Shown here piece after piece: positions 11,732 through 60,110 of a stretch of DNA of 64,000 nt. The DNA lies in assembly GCF_902713615.1 (NCBI RefSeq), contig NC_052160.1, forward strand, positions 137,186,737 through 137,250,736, written 5' to 3'. Each line of letters opens with the position of its first letter. Positions within the stretch are counted from its first letter, which is position 1. The position numbers and the translations under genes were made by a program. This DNA is from Scyliorhinus canicula. Lineage: Eukaryota. The notes under the pieces are model-generated. The model searched no databases and was not told the DNA's origin. It saw nothing but the letters and a program-made list of their open reading frames with translations.

Positions 11732-11771
11732 ATGGAATGGCTTCTGATTATTCTCATTTGTTCTTTGCCAG
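11732..11771 (+). CDS. Gene A exon 1: signal peptide (MEWLLIILICSLP)
   Basis: gaaaATGG Kozak context, hydrophobic leader, phase-1 donor CAG|GTAGGT matching the phase-1 V exon; an in-frame upstream ATG also exists at 11699. Confidence 0.75.
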
Positions 11772-12285
11772 GTAGGTAAGACATCGAATCGCGTTAAAGT
11801 GATAATCAGAATGTCGGTATTATTCAGCGAGTGAGAGAAAGAACATCGAAAATATAACATTCTCTTTTCTGCCTGCGAAATCAATTGAAGTAGCTGTAAT
11901 CAGAAAGTTTCAAAAAGTCAAACTATTGCAGTGTAATCAAAATAACTTGTTTGCTTCTTATTAAGTAGTTTCTTCAAGGAAAGGCAGTGTCAGGCAAATA
12001 CTTCGGATTTCTGTCCAGTTGCTGTTGCAAAACTGGTCTGCAACACGGTGAGCTGACCACGCATTTCCTGTGGCCAGATTATCTGAACAATCATTTATAA
12101 TTACTTGCGCAGTTTAGAGGTCTTGTATCAGGTTCCAGGCTCATCATGGAAATAGGGACAACAAATTTTCTAGGCCTTTCTGAACACAAGATTAGTCCCG
12201 GGAGACTGGAGGAATAGTGGGAAAACTGATTGAGGCCATAATCCAGGATATACACTGAGAGAAATATAAGTTAATACTAGACAGT

Positions 12286-12599
12286 CATAGATCATACAAT
12301 GCAGAAGGAGGCCATTCGGCCCATCAAGTCTGCACTGACCCACTTAAGCCCTCACTTCCCCCCTATCCCCGTAATCCAATAACCCCTCCTAACCTTTTTG
12401 GTCACTAAGGGACACTTTAGCATGGCCAATCCACCTAACCTGCACGTCATTGGACTGTGGGAGGAAACCGGTGCTCTCGGAGGAAACCCACGCAGACAAC
12501 ATGCAGACTCCACACAGACAGTGACCCAGCGGGGAAACGAACCTGGGACCCTGGCGCTGTGAAGCCACAGTGCTATCCACTTGTGCTACTGTGCTGCCC
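12286..12599 (-). mobile_element. HE1-type V-SINE
   Basis: Full head-core-tail, homologous to the copy at 6680. Confidence 0.9.
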
Positions 12600-13757
12600 A
12601 AATACAATTGAACTGTTTCGTACTAATCTTTGGCCTGATTCTGTACAATTCCTTATTCATACAGTTTCAAATGTTGAGGCTAATCAGAGTTGGAATATCT
12701 CTATAGCTGGTACATTTATCCTCATTGCACATTATTTATATACACAGCAATTAAGCTTTAACATTTTTACAACAAATAAAACTCAGACTTTTACTATAAC
12801 TACTGATTCATTATTTGTTTCATTAATTGTAACTTGATTAAGGATCACTACTTATTTAATCATGTTACAGACTGGTAGCTAATTAATACAGTAATTTTTA
12901 AGTAATACATTTGGTTAATACATACACTGGTTCTCTACTGAGTAGTACTACACTCCGTATGCTTCACCTGTGACTTTGTCAAGGGCAGGTCATGTCTGAC
13001 AAATTTAATTGAGTTCTTTAATGAGGTGACAGAGGCAGTAGGTGAAGGGAAACTAGGGATGGGCAATAAATGCTGGGCCGAACCAGAGATGCCCACATCC
13101 TGTAAATGAATTGAAAATAAATGAGGGTAATGCCGTAGATGTATATTTGGACTTTCAGAAAGCATTTGATACAGTGTCACAAGGCAGGTTGGTTAGTAAA
13201 TTAAAAATGTTTGAGGTTGATGGATCCTTGGCAGCATGAATTAGAAGTTGGCTAAGAGATAGGAAACAGAGGCTAGTATAGATGGGCATTTCTCAGACTG
13301 GAGACGAGTTGAAAATAGTGTTCGCCAGGGCTCAGCGTTGCTTTTTCTAATTTGTATGATTTAAAAGTGGGTGTTGAGGGCAAAATCTCTAAATATGCAG
13401 ATGATACTAAGCTAGGTAGAATAGTGAATTGTGAGGATGATGCTGAGCGACTTCAGAGGGCCGTTGACATGTTGGCCCAAAGGGCAGACACCTGACAGAT
13501 GAATTTCAATGCAGAGAAATGTGAGGTAATGCATTTTGGGAGAAGAAACATGGGGAGACAATGCAGGCTCAATGGTACAACTTTGAGGGGTGGACAGGAG
13601 CAGAGGGACCTCAGGGTTCAGTGCATAATTCTCTGAAGGTGGCCAGGCAAGTTGAAACAATTGTTAAGAAGGCTTATAGCATCCTTGGGTTTATAAATAG
13701 AGGCATAGAGTCTAAAAGCAAGGAGGTAATGCTACATCTCTACAATTCATTGGTCAG

Positions 13758-14232
13758 TTCTGGCCTTTGCGTCCCTAGTAGCCCGGCGGAGGATTTTGCT
13801 TCAGTGGAAGGATGCGAGGCCCCCAAGCGTGGAGGCCTGGATTAATGACATGGCTGGGTTCATCAAGTTGGAGAGGGTGAAATTCGCCCTGAGAGGGTCG
13901 GTGCAAGGGTTCTTTAGGCGGTGGCAGCCTTTCCTGGACTTCCTGGCGGAACGGTAGGGAAATAGGCCGGCAGCAGCAGCAACGATGGGGGGGGGGGGGT
14001 TTGGTTCGGTGGGAGGGAGAATTGTGTACATGGGTTTGTTGGATGTGGTGGGTGTTATCTCTTTCCTTTTTGTTGTTTGCTATTTTTTTGTAGTTGCTGG
14101 AGGGTGGGGGGGGGGGGGGGGGGGGGGTGGTGGTGGTGGTTGTTGTTCTTTGGTTTTTACTATGGTTGTTTTGTTAATATTGTTTTGTTGTTTATATTTT
14201 GTGAAAATCTTAATAAAAATTATTTTAAAAAA
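13758..14232 (+). mobile_element. 5'-truncated L1-clade LINE with 16-bp TSD
   Basis: ACAATTCATTGGTCAG at 13742-13757 and 14233-14248; ORF2 C-terminus (ARRRILLQWKDARPP...KFALRGSVQGF), G-rich 3'UTR, AATAAA and A-tail. Confidence 0.9.
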
Positions 14233-14312
14233 ACAATTCATTGGTCAGACCACATTTGGAGTATTGTGTTCAGTTGTGGACACCTTATTTAAGGAAGGAT
14301 GTTAAAGCCCTG

Positions 14313-15005
14313 GGGCGGAATACTCCGCTCCCGCGCGGCATCGGGAAGGCCGTCGTGAATTAGGCCGAGTTTCACGATGGCCTCGGAGGCCGTTCCTCGC
14401 ACCCTATTCACCTCCCCCCCCCCCCAGGGGGCTAGGAGCGGCGTTCCGTAAATCTCGGCCGCCGGGCCTTGACACTTGCGTCAAGGCGGCGCGCCGAGAA
14501 TGACGCGACGGCGGCGCCTAAGTGACGTCAGCCGCGCATGCGCAGGTTGGCCGGCTCCAACCCGCGCATGCGCGGTTGCCGTCTTCCCCTCCGCTGCCCC
14601 GCAAGACGTGGCGGTTTTATCTTACGGGGCACAGAGGGGAAAGAGTGCGTCCCTTGGAGACGCCGGCCCGACGATTGGTGGCACTGATTGCGGGCCTGTC
14701 CCCTCCCGAGCACGGCCGTGATGCTCACTCCCCTCTCCGCCCCCCACAAGCCACAAACAAAACTTTGGTGCCATGTTCACGACGGCAGCGACCAGGTGTG
14801 GTTGCTGCCGGCGTGAACAGGTCGGGAACGTCAGGCCGCTCGGCCCATTCGGGCCGGAGAATTGCCGGTCGCCTTGAAAAACTGCGAGCGGCGATTCTCC
14901 GAGCGGGGGTGGGAGAATCGCGGTGGGTGCCAGGGCGGCGTGTCATGAGTCGCCCGGCCCTCCCGTGATTCTCCCACCTGGCGTGGGGAGTGGAGAATCG
15001 GGCCC
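14313..15005. mobile_element. Harbinger-type MITE, TSD CTG
   Basis: TIRs GGGCGGAATACTCC / GGGCCCGATTCTCC; CTG on both flanks; removing it restores the CR1 sequence gccctggagagggtgcag. Confidence 0.85.
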
Positions 15006-58106: not shown

Positions 58107-58377
58107 CTGTTGAAACAAGGGAACAACATTCAGATTCACCTCATTTTCACTCGTCGTTAACTGAGAGATCATCATTGTGAAATGGAAGCGATAACAAGAG
58201 CCTGGATGATATAATAATTTGGATGATTTAATTTCTGTGTAATTTCCCTCCTTCTTATAGCAAGTAGAGTTCATTCTGATACCTGACTGAGCTCATTTGT
58301 ATGATAACTCCTGTTTCTTCTCCATACCTTGGCGTTGATGCAGCAGAGTTACGACAGGAGCAGTTAGAGGGTGGACT

Positions 58378-58950
58378 TATTACGGGCCAGGGTTTAGAGA
58401 ACCCCAAAGTCTATCATGGCGTTCACCTGACCCACAACTTTTAATAGATTTTGGTTATGGGGAGCACAAGGGCCCACTCTACTGGTGTGGTGCAGCAGAG
58501 ATCTAAAGTACTTTTAAAACAAAACAATGTTTATTATATGAATCCAGTTAACATTTTATAAACACACAGCAAACATCTGAGCAACTATCAACTCAAATAC
58601 TCCCCCCCAAGAATACAGTACTCTATAAGTAACCCTTAATCTTTCCTAGCAACAGCCATAAGACAAATACCCTCTTTAACAAAGACAGCAGATTGAAATT
58701 CTCTACTGAGAGCAGTTATCACTTTTAAATTAGCAAGTGATCTGAAGGCATTATTTTCATGTAGCGAGAGTTCAAAATTACACCTTGTTTGCTGGATGCA
58801 GCTCCAACACTGAAAATGAAACTAACACACACTGTAGCTGCCAGCTCAAAAACGAAAGTAAAAGCAGACAGACAGCCCAGCTCCACACACACTGACATCA
58901 CTGCAGCTATTTGATAAACACCAATTTATTTAAGGTACTCTCACATGACA
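58378..58950 (-). mobile_element. Solo LTR family L1x (copy 3), 4-bp TSD GACT
   Basis: GACT at 58374-58377 and 58951-58954; minus-strand termini TGTCATG...TAATA. Confidence 0.9.
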
Positions 58951-59199
58951 GACTACAATCCAGATATATCCTATGGAATGGTAAGGTACCCCTTGGATAA
59001 TGTTCTGTGACACCTTTGCGAGAGATTGGGAATCCTCTGGAATTGTTAAAATTGAAAATGGTGATACACTTTTTACGTACAAATGCATTGGAACTGTCAA
59101 GATGTCAAAGAACTGTCCAACTGTCAAGCACAGGTTGACCTAGTCAGTCATGGATAGGGCAGAGGTAGTGCTGTGCCCTAGCTATGAGGTGGTGAGGGC

Positions 59200-59520
59200 T
59201 GGTGGGCTATTTTTTTGTTTAAAATGGAAGTAATTTTGCCTCACCTCCATTTTAAATGGATGACCCCTTATTCTAAAACAGTGACCCCAGTTCTAGATTC
59301 TCCCACAAGAGGAACATCCTTTCCACATCCATCCTGTCAATGCCCCTCAGGATCTTAAATGTTTCTATCAAGTCATCTCTTAGTCTTCTCAACTCCAGTC
59401 ACACAAGCCTAGCCTTCCCAACCTGTCCTCATGAAACGACCTTCCCTGTCCAGGTATTAATCTAGTAAACCTTCCCTGAACCATTTCCAATGCATTTGCC
59501 ACTCTTCCTTAAATGAGGAG
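59200..59520 (-). mobile_element. CR1-clade LINE 3' fragment
   Basis: ctagttctagattctcccacaagagg...tcctcccttaaat motifs. Confidence 0.7.
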
Positions 59521-59786
59521 AACAATAATATACACAATATCCAATCAGATTCTGTTTTAATTTATGGGATAATTGGAATTTCTACAATGTTCCTACTTGT
59601 TTTGGGGAATATTTCTGACCATTTTATGTGAAAAATGCAAATCAATGACGTTGTTTAGAACGGCTGACAAACCAAATGAAGTGAATTTGGTCAACTCCCC
59701 AAATTCAGAATGACTGACGAAACTTAACCTGCGACCAGTTTGGATCAACATTAATTAAAAGTTCAATTGTTTACAGTAACACTTAC

Positions 59787-60110
59787 CATTGCTGCTGATT
59801 TTCGCCACATAACTGCAGTTCTGCTCTGAAAGGCTGATGACCGACACATTCACCATTTGACTGGATTGTTCCCCCTGATTATTTGAGGCTGTGCAGTAAT
59901 ATTGATGCTGTTGCTGTTTGAAGGATTGACAACGGAGATCCAGTTTATTTGTGTCGGAGATGCTTGAATCTCCAGACGGGGTCTTTTCAGTCCATGTGTA
60001 CTGAATGGGGAGGGAGCCCCGGAGAGACTCACAGGAGACGGACACTGAGCCCCCAGAACATGAGACTTTTGGCGGGGATAGAAATCTCAACACAGGAACA
60101 GAGACGGATT
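59787..60110 (-). CDS. Gene B Ig C2-type exon (paralogue of gene A exon 3)
   Basis: Acceptor tttctttcccacag|, donor G|GTAAGT, phase 1/1, 324 nt; SVSVSCESLRGSLPIQYTW...QYYCTASNNQG. Confidence 0.9.

Follow-up and report, generated by a model that had tools for sequence, protein, structure and literature searches.

Two probable MDIR-type receptor genes of activating and inhibitory layout lie tail to tail in a Scyliorhinus canicula cluster

Introduction

The modular domain immune-type receptors, or MDIRs, comprise activating and inhibitory families related to CD300, TREM, FCAR and pIgR (PMC3031540). They have hardly been studied since their first description in a skate, and mentions of them are scarce in the literature searched. 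The stretch considered here, 64,000 nucleotides of Scyliorhinus canicula DNA (contig NC_052160.1, positions 137,186,737 to 137,250,736, hereafter the window), carries two convergent genes for immunoglobulin (Ig) receptors, named gene A and gene B. With a probability of roughly 0.75, the window holds two real MDIR-type receptors, gene A with an activating and gene B with an inhibitory layout, which are neighbours in a multigene cluster and not matched partners. They are not a new kind of system but join a known receptor family.

MDIR2 of Callorhinchus resembles gene B in having a variable-type (V) Ig domain, a C2-type Ig domain, a Cys-Glu stalk, an uncharged transmembrane (TM) segment and three aligned tyrosine motifs, and MDIRs, like the family described here, are multigene and include forms with a charged TM as well as forms with immunoreceptor tyrosine-based inhibitory motifs (ITIMs). 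Identity between MDIR2 and the catshark genes is moderate, and the latter stand under unrelated names (PECAM-like, pIgR-like) or, for gene B, under no model that could be found. The CD300/CMRF35 receptors share with gene A a V domain with an extra disulfide pattern (37% identity and 1.9 Å to mouse CD300lf) and, with the family as a whole, the presence of ITIM and charged-TM forms in one cluster. They differ from gene A and the orthologues of gene B in carrying a single V domain on a mucin-like stalk, where the catshark-type receptors have a C2 domain after the V. Activating CD300 members use Lys or Glu in the TM, whereas the charge found here is an Arg within an Arg-Trp motif.

Other receptor systems compare less fully. 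The pIgR has two to five tandem V domains and no C2, whereas gene A has one V domain followed by a C2 domain. The best matches of the C2 domain outside the family are to FCRL5, at 31-34% identity over several stretches; FCRL proteins, in contrast, consist of C2/FcR-type domains only, with no CD300/pIgR-type V. PECAM-1 has six C2 domains and a long ITIM tail, unlike the V domain, single C2 and four-residue tail of gene A. The LILR/PIR and KIR families resemble this one in pairing forms with an Arg TM and short tail with forms whose uncharged TM precedes ITIMs about 30 residues apart, and also in the near-identical activating and inhibitory ectodomains seen in this cluster (gene B and XP_038676045.1) and in Rhinoraja. 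They are built of C2 domains only, in contrast to V plus C2, and show no sequence relationship to these genes past the Ig fold. The likeness of partner ectodomains that marks such paired receptors is lacking between genes A and B.

Family membership

Judged by sequence against Callorhinchus MDIR2, genes A and B appear to belong to the MDIR-type family. The Callorhinchus milii protein AFK11143.1, deposited as 'modular domain immune-type receptor 2' (MDIR2), is 42% identical to gene A over 239 aa, covering the whole ectodomain (E = 1e-58), and shows 36% identity to the orthologue of gene B across 418 aa (E = 1e-70), where all three tyrosine motifs line up. An exhaustive search with the gene B C2 domain gave 459 representatives at E <= 0.001, about 45 of those listed being at least 50% identical. 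The family is chondrichthyan-wide, with named members in Scyliorhinus, Mustelus, Carcharodon, Chiloscyllium, Hemiscyllium, Heptranchias, Rhinoraja, Amblyraja, Mobula, Hemitrygon, Hypanus and Callorhinchus; skates are represented by Rhinoraja and Amblyraja. Their automatic names include pIgR-like, CMRF35-like, Fc receptor-like 5, A33-like, CXADR-like and TRIM69-like, the name 'pIgR-like' being given because of the V domain only. The 760-aa Rhinoraja longicauda protein XP_078277019.1, named 'E3 ubiquitin-protein ligase TRIM69-like', contains two family C2 domains and an Arg-Trp TM, and probably results from the fusion of gene models.

Among the 29 receptors that were typed, two combinations of membrane segment and tail recur. 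Seventeen are of the Arg-TM type, in which the Arg-Trp motif is followed by a short tail, as in gene A, XP_038676045.1 and members of Mobula, Rhinoraja, Amblyraja, Hemitrygon and Hemiscyllium. The other 12 are of the ITIM type, with an uncharged TM like that of gene B and then ITIM-like motifs, three or four in number. Outside the cartilaginous fish, V-C2 proteins of gar, paddlefish, coelacanth and a salamander share the Arg-Trp motif, and their C2 domains are 36-39% identical to that of gene B.

The two genes lie tail to tail and their exon phases agree (C2 1/1, stalk 1/2, TM 2/1), as the first-pass annotation of the window had proposed (Table 1). Their stop codons are 14.7 kb apart, and all eight of their introns are GT-AG. 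The estimate of about 50% identity between the two C2 domains, made in that annotation, also holds: tblastn gives 51% across 110 residues, and a second comparison 55% across 98. The MDIR/CD300-like shark cluster that it envisaged is borne out by the MDIR2 homology, by the CD300/pIgR-like V and FCRL-like C2 domains and by further family genes nearby. Overall, that first reading of the locus is partly supported, the exceptions being taken up where they arise below.

Table 1. Features of the two receptor genes, in window positions (nt, nucleotides; ORF, open reading frame).
Feature	Position	Strand	Length and phase	Basis or remark
Gene A first exon, signal peptide with start codon	11699-11771	+	73 nt, ends phase 1	tblastn 100% to XP_038676044.1 residues 1-24; GT donor
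Gene A V exon, CD300/pIgR-like, four cysteines	20028-20354	+	327 nt, 1/1	Pfam V-set E = 1.7e-14
Gene A C2 exon	22166-22486	+	321 nt, 1/1	Pfam Ig_2/Ig_3/Ig_C17orf99; XP_038676044.1 residues 134-241
Gene A stalk exon, conserved Cys-Glu motif	25509-25629	+	121 nt, 1/2	XP_038676044.1 residues 242-280
Gene A TM exon	33115-33215	+	101 nt	Arg codon 33146-33148; TAA 33212-33214; 100% to XP_038676044.1 residues 281-313
Region between stop codons	33216-47872		14.7 kb	repeat-rich
Gene B C2 exon	60110-59787	-	324 nt, 1/1	Pfam Ig_3/Ig_2; seen as ORF
Gene B stalk exon, Cys-Glu motif, Ser/Thr/Pro-rich	58106-58031	-	76 nt, 1/2	weak homology and splice sites; RNA joints
Gene B TM exon, ends KKNNK	56980-56892	-	89 nt, 2/1	hydropathy; RNA joint to stalk
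Gene B small cytoplasmic exon	49732-49680	-	53 nt, 1/0	homologue-peptide scan; S. torazame and Mustelus alignment; GT-AG
Gene B tail exon	48169-47873	-	297 nt	stop 47875-47873; seen as ORF; 83% to S. torazame tail
Gene B motif IAYAVL	48076-48059	-		fits ITIM consensus
Gene B motif VTYSGI	47989-47972	-		fits ITIM consensus
Gene B motif AVYANV	47899-47882	-		Ala at position -2, outside ITIM consensus

Gene A, a short-tailed receptor with a transmembrane arginine

Gene A (plus strand, 11699-33215) is already annotated in RefSeq, under a misleading name: all five exons match the 313-aa protein XP_038676044.1, 'platelet endothelial cell adhesion molecule-like [Scyliorhinus canicula]', at 100% (tblastn). 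On LR744044.1 of assembly GCA_902713615.2 it lies at 137,198,435-137,219,950, in a locus identical to window positions 1699-43214, which places the window at about 137.187-137.251 Mb of this chromosome. The start that the first-pass annotation placed at 11732 is the second in-frame ATG and gives way to the RefSeq start at 11699, whereas its observation of a TM arginine with no signalling tail stands. This residue, Arg292, sits eight residues inside a hydrophobic stretch of 25 and falls in the outer third of the TM; the product stops after KKN, with a four-residue tail past the TM. Directly after the TAA comes G|GTAAGG, which makes a good 5' splice site in the phase-1 position, which is the position of the donor to further cytoplasmic exons in gene B and in XP_038676045.1. 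The donor after the gene A stop may thus be a fossil of a longer tail. No relic ITIM exons were found on the plus strand downstream of gene A by tblastn with inhibitory homologues.

Among the best 60 of 210 phmmer matches to PDB, the gene A V domain was matched by pIgR domains and CD300 members, with CLM-1/CD300f at E = 2e-18, and more weakly by NKp44 and TREM2, while the C2 region was matched by the FCRL5 entry 9loc. An AlphaFold model, built on a 14-sequence family alignment and with a mean predicted local distance difference test score of 77, consists of two Ig domains, a disordered stalk (250-285) and a helix (281-312). In Foldseek comparisons, the modelled V domain superposes on mouse CD300lf with the root-mean-square deviation and identity given in the Introduction and a template modelling score of 0.89, and the modelled two-domain arrangement comes closest to the V-C2 of Siglec-5.

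These features bear on another way of reading gene A, as a tail-less adhesion, decoy or shed ligand-binding molecule whose arginine only marks the membrane boundary. Arg292 does sit near the outer end of the hydrophobic stretch, the RefSeq name is 'PECAM-like', no shark adaptor came to light in this analysis, and the ectodomain is divergent and on a long branch. Nevertheless, the Arg-Trp TM motif and very short tails are kept from chimaera-grade to tetrapod relatives, which argues for a protein partner in the membrane; the PDB matches listed above include CD300, pIgR and FCRL5 but no PECAM, and a V domain with one C2 is unlike PECAM-1. Such a non-activating role for gene A is therefore considered unlikely.

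Gene B, a transcribed receptor with an ITIM-type tail

The five exons of gene B found in the window (minus strand, 60110-47873) join into one open frame of 278 aa that ends in a stop codon, with a TM helix free of charged residues. The TM and tail exons thus share a frame, as they appear to do in the uninterrupted S. torazame protein GCB72748.1. The tail tyrosines are spaced by 29 and 30 residues, and the consensus applied to them was [S/I/V/L]xYxx[I/V/L]. The uncharged TM and the three tyrosine motifs named in the first-pass annotation are confirmed, although the ITIM consensus covers just two of these motifs.

Both the C2 and the tail exons of gene B are present in five presumed S. canicula RNA runs, X3, X1, X5, X8 and X4. 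RNA contigs from four runs were placed on window positions 56600-60300, where depth is found on the C2, stalk and TM exons and is zero in unique intron bins. The C2-stalk joint, 59787-58106, occurs in runs X1, X5 and X2 with CT..AC ends, equivalent to GT..AG on the minus strand, and the stalk-TM joint, 58031-56980, occurs in X3 and X5. X1 has this joint too, with a variant of 5 nt, and a single X1 contig of 210 nt spans the TM, stalk and C2 exons. Upstream, a contig of X3 runs 255 nt past 60111 into sequence absent from the window, and this overhang encodes the end (G strand) of a V domain, Met-Phe-Ser-Val-Glu-Leu-Gln-Thr-Ser-Tyr, followed by Glu-Ser-Val-Ser-Val-Pro of the C2 exon. The gene B C2 is therefore preceded by a V exon like that of gene A, and the upstream exons of the two genes are related. 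These contigs show transcription of gene B and its splicing from the V through to the TM exon, so that the exon chain first proposed is seen in RNA for the V-C2, C2-stalk and stalk-TM joints, with the link to the tail resting on orthologues.

Two further observations concern these RNA data. The TM exon begins in X1 with five bases (56976-56980, minus strand) that differ, giving Ser-Ala-Val-Tyr, as in S. torazame, where the window has Ser-Leu-Ile-Tyr; the adjoining stalk and C2 pieces of that contig are identical to the window, and the variant is probably an allele. Three intron blocks, 57344-57839, 58336-58955 and 59204-59451, have RNA depths up to four orders of magnitude above those of the exons in all four runs, and are transcribed repeats, not exons.

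The orthologues of gene B support the same exon order. S. torazame GCB72748.1 (425 aa), found with the tail of a white-shark homologue, runs uninterrupted through leader, V, C2, stalk, TM, small exon and tail; gene B is 87-88% identical to it in the C2 domain and 83% in the tail. Aligned to S. torazame XP_072336137.1 in 283 columns, the gene B product shows 81% identity and no frameshift, and the tail exons of the two species are 93% identical in DNA. Gene B is also collinear with homologues of Carcharodon, Heptranchias and Mustelus, its TM being 83% identical to that of the Mustelus homologue. Intron sizes at the S. torazame locus mirror those of gene B, and the V exon there lies 5 kb upstream of the C2 exon, so the gene B V exon would fall just past position 64000, with a leader expected, by the same analogy, some 13 kb beyond it. 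As a side observation, XP_072336137.1 (613 aa, V-C2-V-C2; CM105038.1) joins two tandem leader-V-C2 units about 50 kb apart, of which the older 425-aa model draws on the second only. The gene B ectodomain would comprise at least V-C2, and possibly V-C2-V-C2 as in the S. torazame RefSeq model. In S. torazame, the 10 kb downstream of the orthologue of gene B yielded no gene A orthologue.

Gene B could alternatively be a decaying or non-functional S. canicula copy, transcribed but losing its inhibitory tail or having no intact 5' exons, which would leave one working receptor in the locus. This view draws on an 18-nt deletion that takes out the first ITIM, on V and leader exons that lie outside the window, and on the absence of a protein model found for the gene in S. 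canicula; the consecutive accessions XP_038676044.1 and XP_038676045.1 give a weak hint that no coding model exists between them. It is improbable, however, since all five window exons are open with GT-AG introns, the product aligns to its orthologue at the identity given above and with no frameshift, the tail deletion keeps the frame, and several RNA runs show expression and splicing of the gene, with its C2 joined to a V exon.

Cluster neighbours and not matched partners

The catshark cluster contains at least two further family genes within 185 kb, and one S. canicula chromosome arm carries at least four family genes. The activating relative XP_038676045.1 is encoded on the same chromosome at 137.340-137.360 Mb, about 90 kb past the window. 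Another gene, with a 620-aa V-set/Ig product, begins 10 kb past it (LR744044.1, about 137.37 Mb), and the catshark cluster therefore extends further.

The C2 domain of gene B is 86% identical to that of the activating XP_038676045.1, as against 51-55% to that of gene A, so that by ectodomain likeness the partner of gene B is not gene A. The V domain of gene A is only 48-49% identical to the V domains of the gene B orthologue and of XP_038676045.1. When 60 C2 domains are placed in a tree, gene B falls into one clade with its S. torazame orthologue and XP_038676045.1 (Shimodaira-Hasegawa-like approximate likelihood ratio test, SH-aLRT, 99), while gene A has a long branch that leaves close to the base of the chondrichthyan sequences. 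A second tree, of the membrane-proximal C2 domains of the 29 typed receptors, requires 11 or more changes of signalling type, and the approximately unbiased (AU) test rejects monophyly of the inhibitory forms (p = 0.0008), for an inhibitory group that was defined after the first tree had been seen. Rhinoraja, too, has activating and inhibitory genes with near-identical C2 domains. Judged by these comparisons, the family behaves as a paired-receptor family in which signalling modules and ectodomains have been reshuffled or homogenised, while genes A and B are cluster neighbours and not ectodomain-matched partners. The pair first proposed stands in that one gene of each layout is present, tail to tail, but not in the sense of matched ectodomains. 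There is little to recommend a true functional pair of A and B with a common ligand in spite of their C2 divergence, for although the genes lie side by side, converge and agree in their exon phases and in the order of their domains, and ligand binding is probably in the V domain, of which only the last 10 residues have been seen in gene B, the C2 and V identities and the place of gene A apart on its long branch all stand against it.

Predicted signalling and points of doubt

A basic residue in the outer part of the TM helix together with a very short tail marks a receptor that assembles with Asp-bearing dimers containing immunoreceptor tyrosine-based activation motifs (ITAMs), and ITIMs about 30 residues apart suit tandem-SH2 phosphatases. 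Gene A would most likely not signal alone; its Arg is predicted to pair with an ITAM adaptor bearing a TM Asp, candidates being adaptors of the FcRgamma/CD3zeta type or of the DAP12 type, which would make it activating. Gene B is predicted to be inhibitory, the phosphorylated tyrosines of its tail of about 120 residues recruiting the tandem-SH2 phosphatases SHP-1/2. The activating and inhibitory roles are inferred from motifs, and the adaptor coupling, phosphatase recruitment, ligand and cell type of A and B likewise.

Several points weigh against the reading of the window as two real receptors of opposite layout. The support for gene A comes from its RefSeq match, the RNA evidence being for gene B. 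As to its presumed partner chain, no FcRgamma chain was reported from sharks in a 2014 survey, which drew on much poorer genomes (PMC4016189), and a literature search for shark DAP12, FcRgamma and CD3zeta adaptors gave nothing useful. The group used in the AU test, as stated above, was chosen after the fact.

The remaining points concern gene B. Its third tyrosine motif is non-canonical, and it has lost its membrane-proximal ITIM: the DNA alignment to S. torazame places the 18-nt in-frame deletion near 48150, where Ile-Val-Tyr-Ala-Thr-Val, an ITIM present in S. torazame, Carcharodon, Heptranchias and Mustelus, is gone. The joining of the TM exon to 49732 and of 49680 to 48169 is inferred for S. 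canicula from orthologues only. Its V and leader exons are beyond the window, and the open frame described is that of the five exons inside it; tblastn with five homologues matches a V exon in the window only in gene A, and a 30-nt RNA overhang upstream of the gene B C2 has no match in the window. Word searches with the gene A C2 and the white-shark tail and the exhaustive representative search with the gene B C2 found no S. canicula protein model for gene B, although length windows and 50% clustering could hide one. Finally, X1 contains an odd joint, 58950->56892, from the TM 3' end to the C2-stalk intron, which goes back 2059 nt at a depth of 13. The sequence that it reaches is found once in the window, which excludes a second copy there though not elsewhere; the joint could come from a circular RNA, a paralogue or an assembly chimera.

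Other features of the window

Two GC-rich ORFs with similar peptides lie on opposite strands near the two ends of the window (4329-5225 and 62727-63866), the larger having a weak Myb/SANT-like match (Myb_DNA-bind_5, E = 0.004). Both probably derive from one transposon-related element of which they are copies. Four further ORFs (13561-13845, 15074-15487, 17368-18063 and 51113-51670) share a Leu-Gly-Leu-Phe/Tyr-Ser-Leu-Glu...Arg-Arg motif, have no Pfam match and look like the 3' ends of one retroelement family scattered in the introns of both genes. No Rfam match was found anywhere in the window.

Implications for the receptor family

The locus provides an exon-level example of MDIR-type genes in a chromosome-scale shark genome, and adds in gene B an inhibitory member that the searches could match to no S. 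canicula protein model. It also allows misleading automatic names (PECAM-like, pIgR-like and TRIM69-like) to be corrected. The 2014 survey cited above found no PIGR or FcRL homologues in sharks (PMC4016189), a statement that the MDIR-type family, with its pIgR/CD300-type V and FCRL5-like C2, contradicts at the domain level. The family comparisons are evidence for paired-receptor behaviour in which signalling modules and ectodomains have been recombined.

V-C2 proteins with the Arg-Trp motif occur in chimaera, sharks and rays, and in a related form in gar, paddlefish, coelacanth, caecilian and salamander. As a tentative extension, with the odds clearly against it, receptors with a CD300/pIgR-type V, an FCRL-type C2 and an Arg-Trp TM might constitute an unnamed jawed-vertebrate lineage that has kept this motif for more than 400 million years to dock one adaptor. 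If so, the shark cluster would keep an ancestral combination of domain types that are later separate in pIgR/CD300 and FCRL, against the published view that no such homologues are present in cartilaginous fish (PMC4016189). The conserved Arg-Trp TM motif is, in addition, a possible handle for finding the shark adaptor chain.

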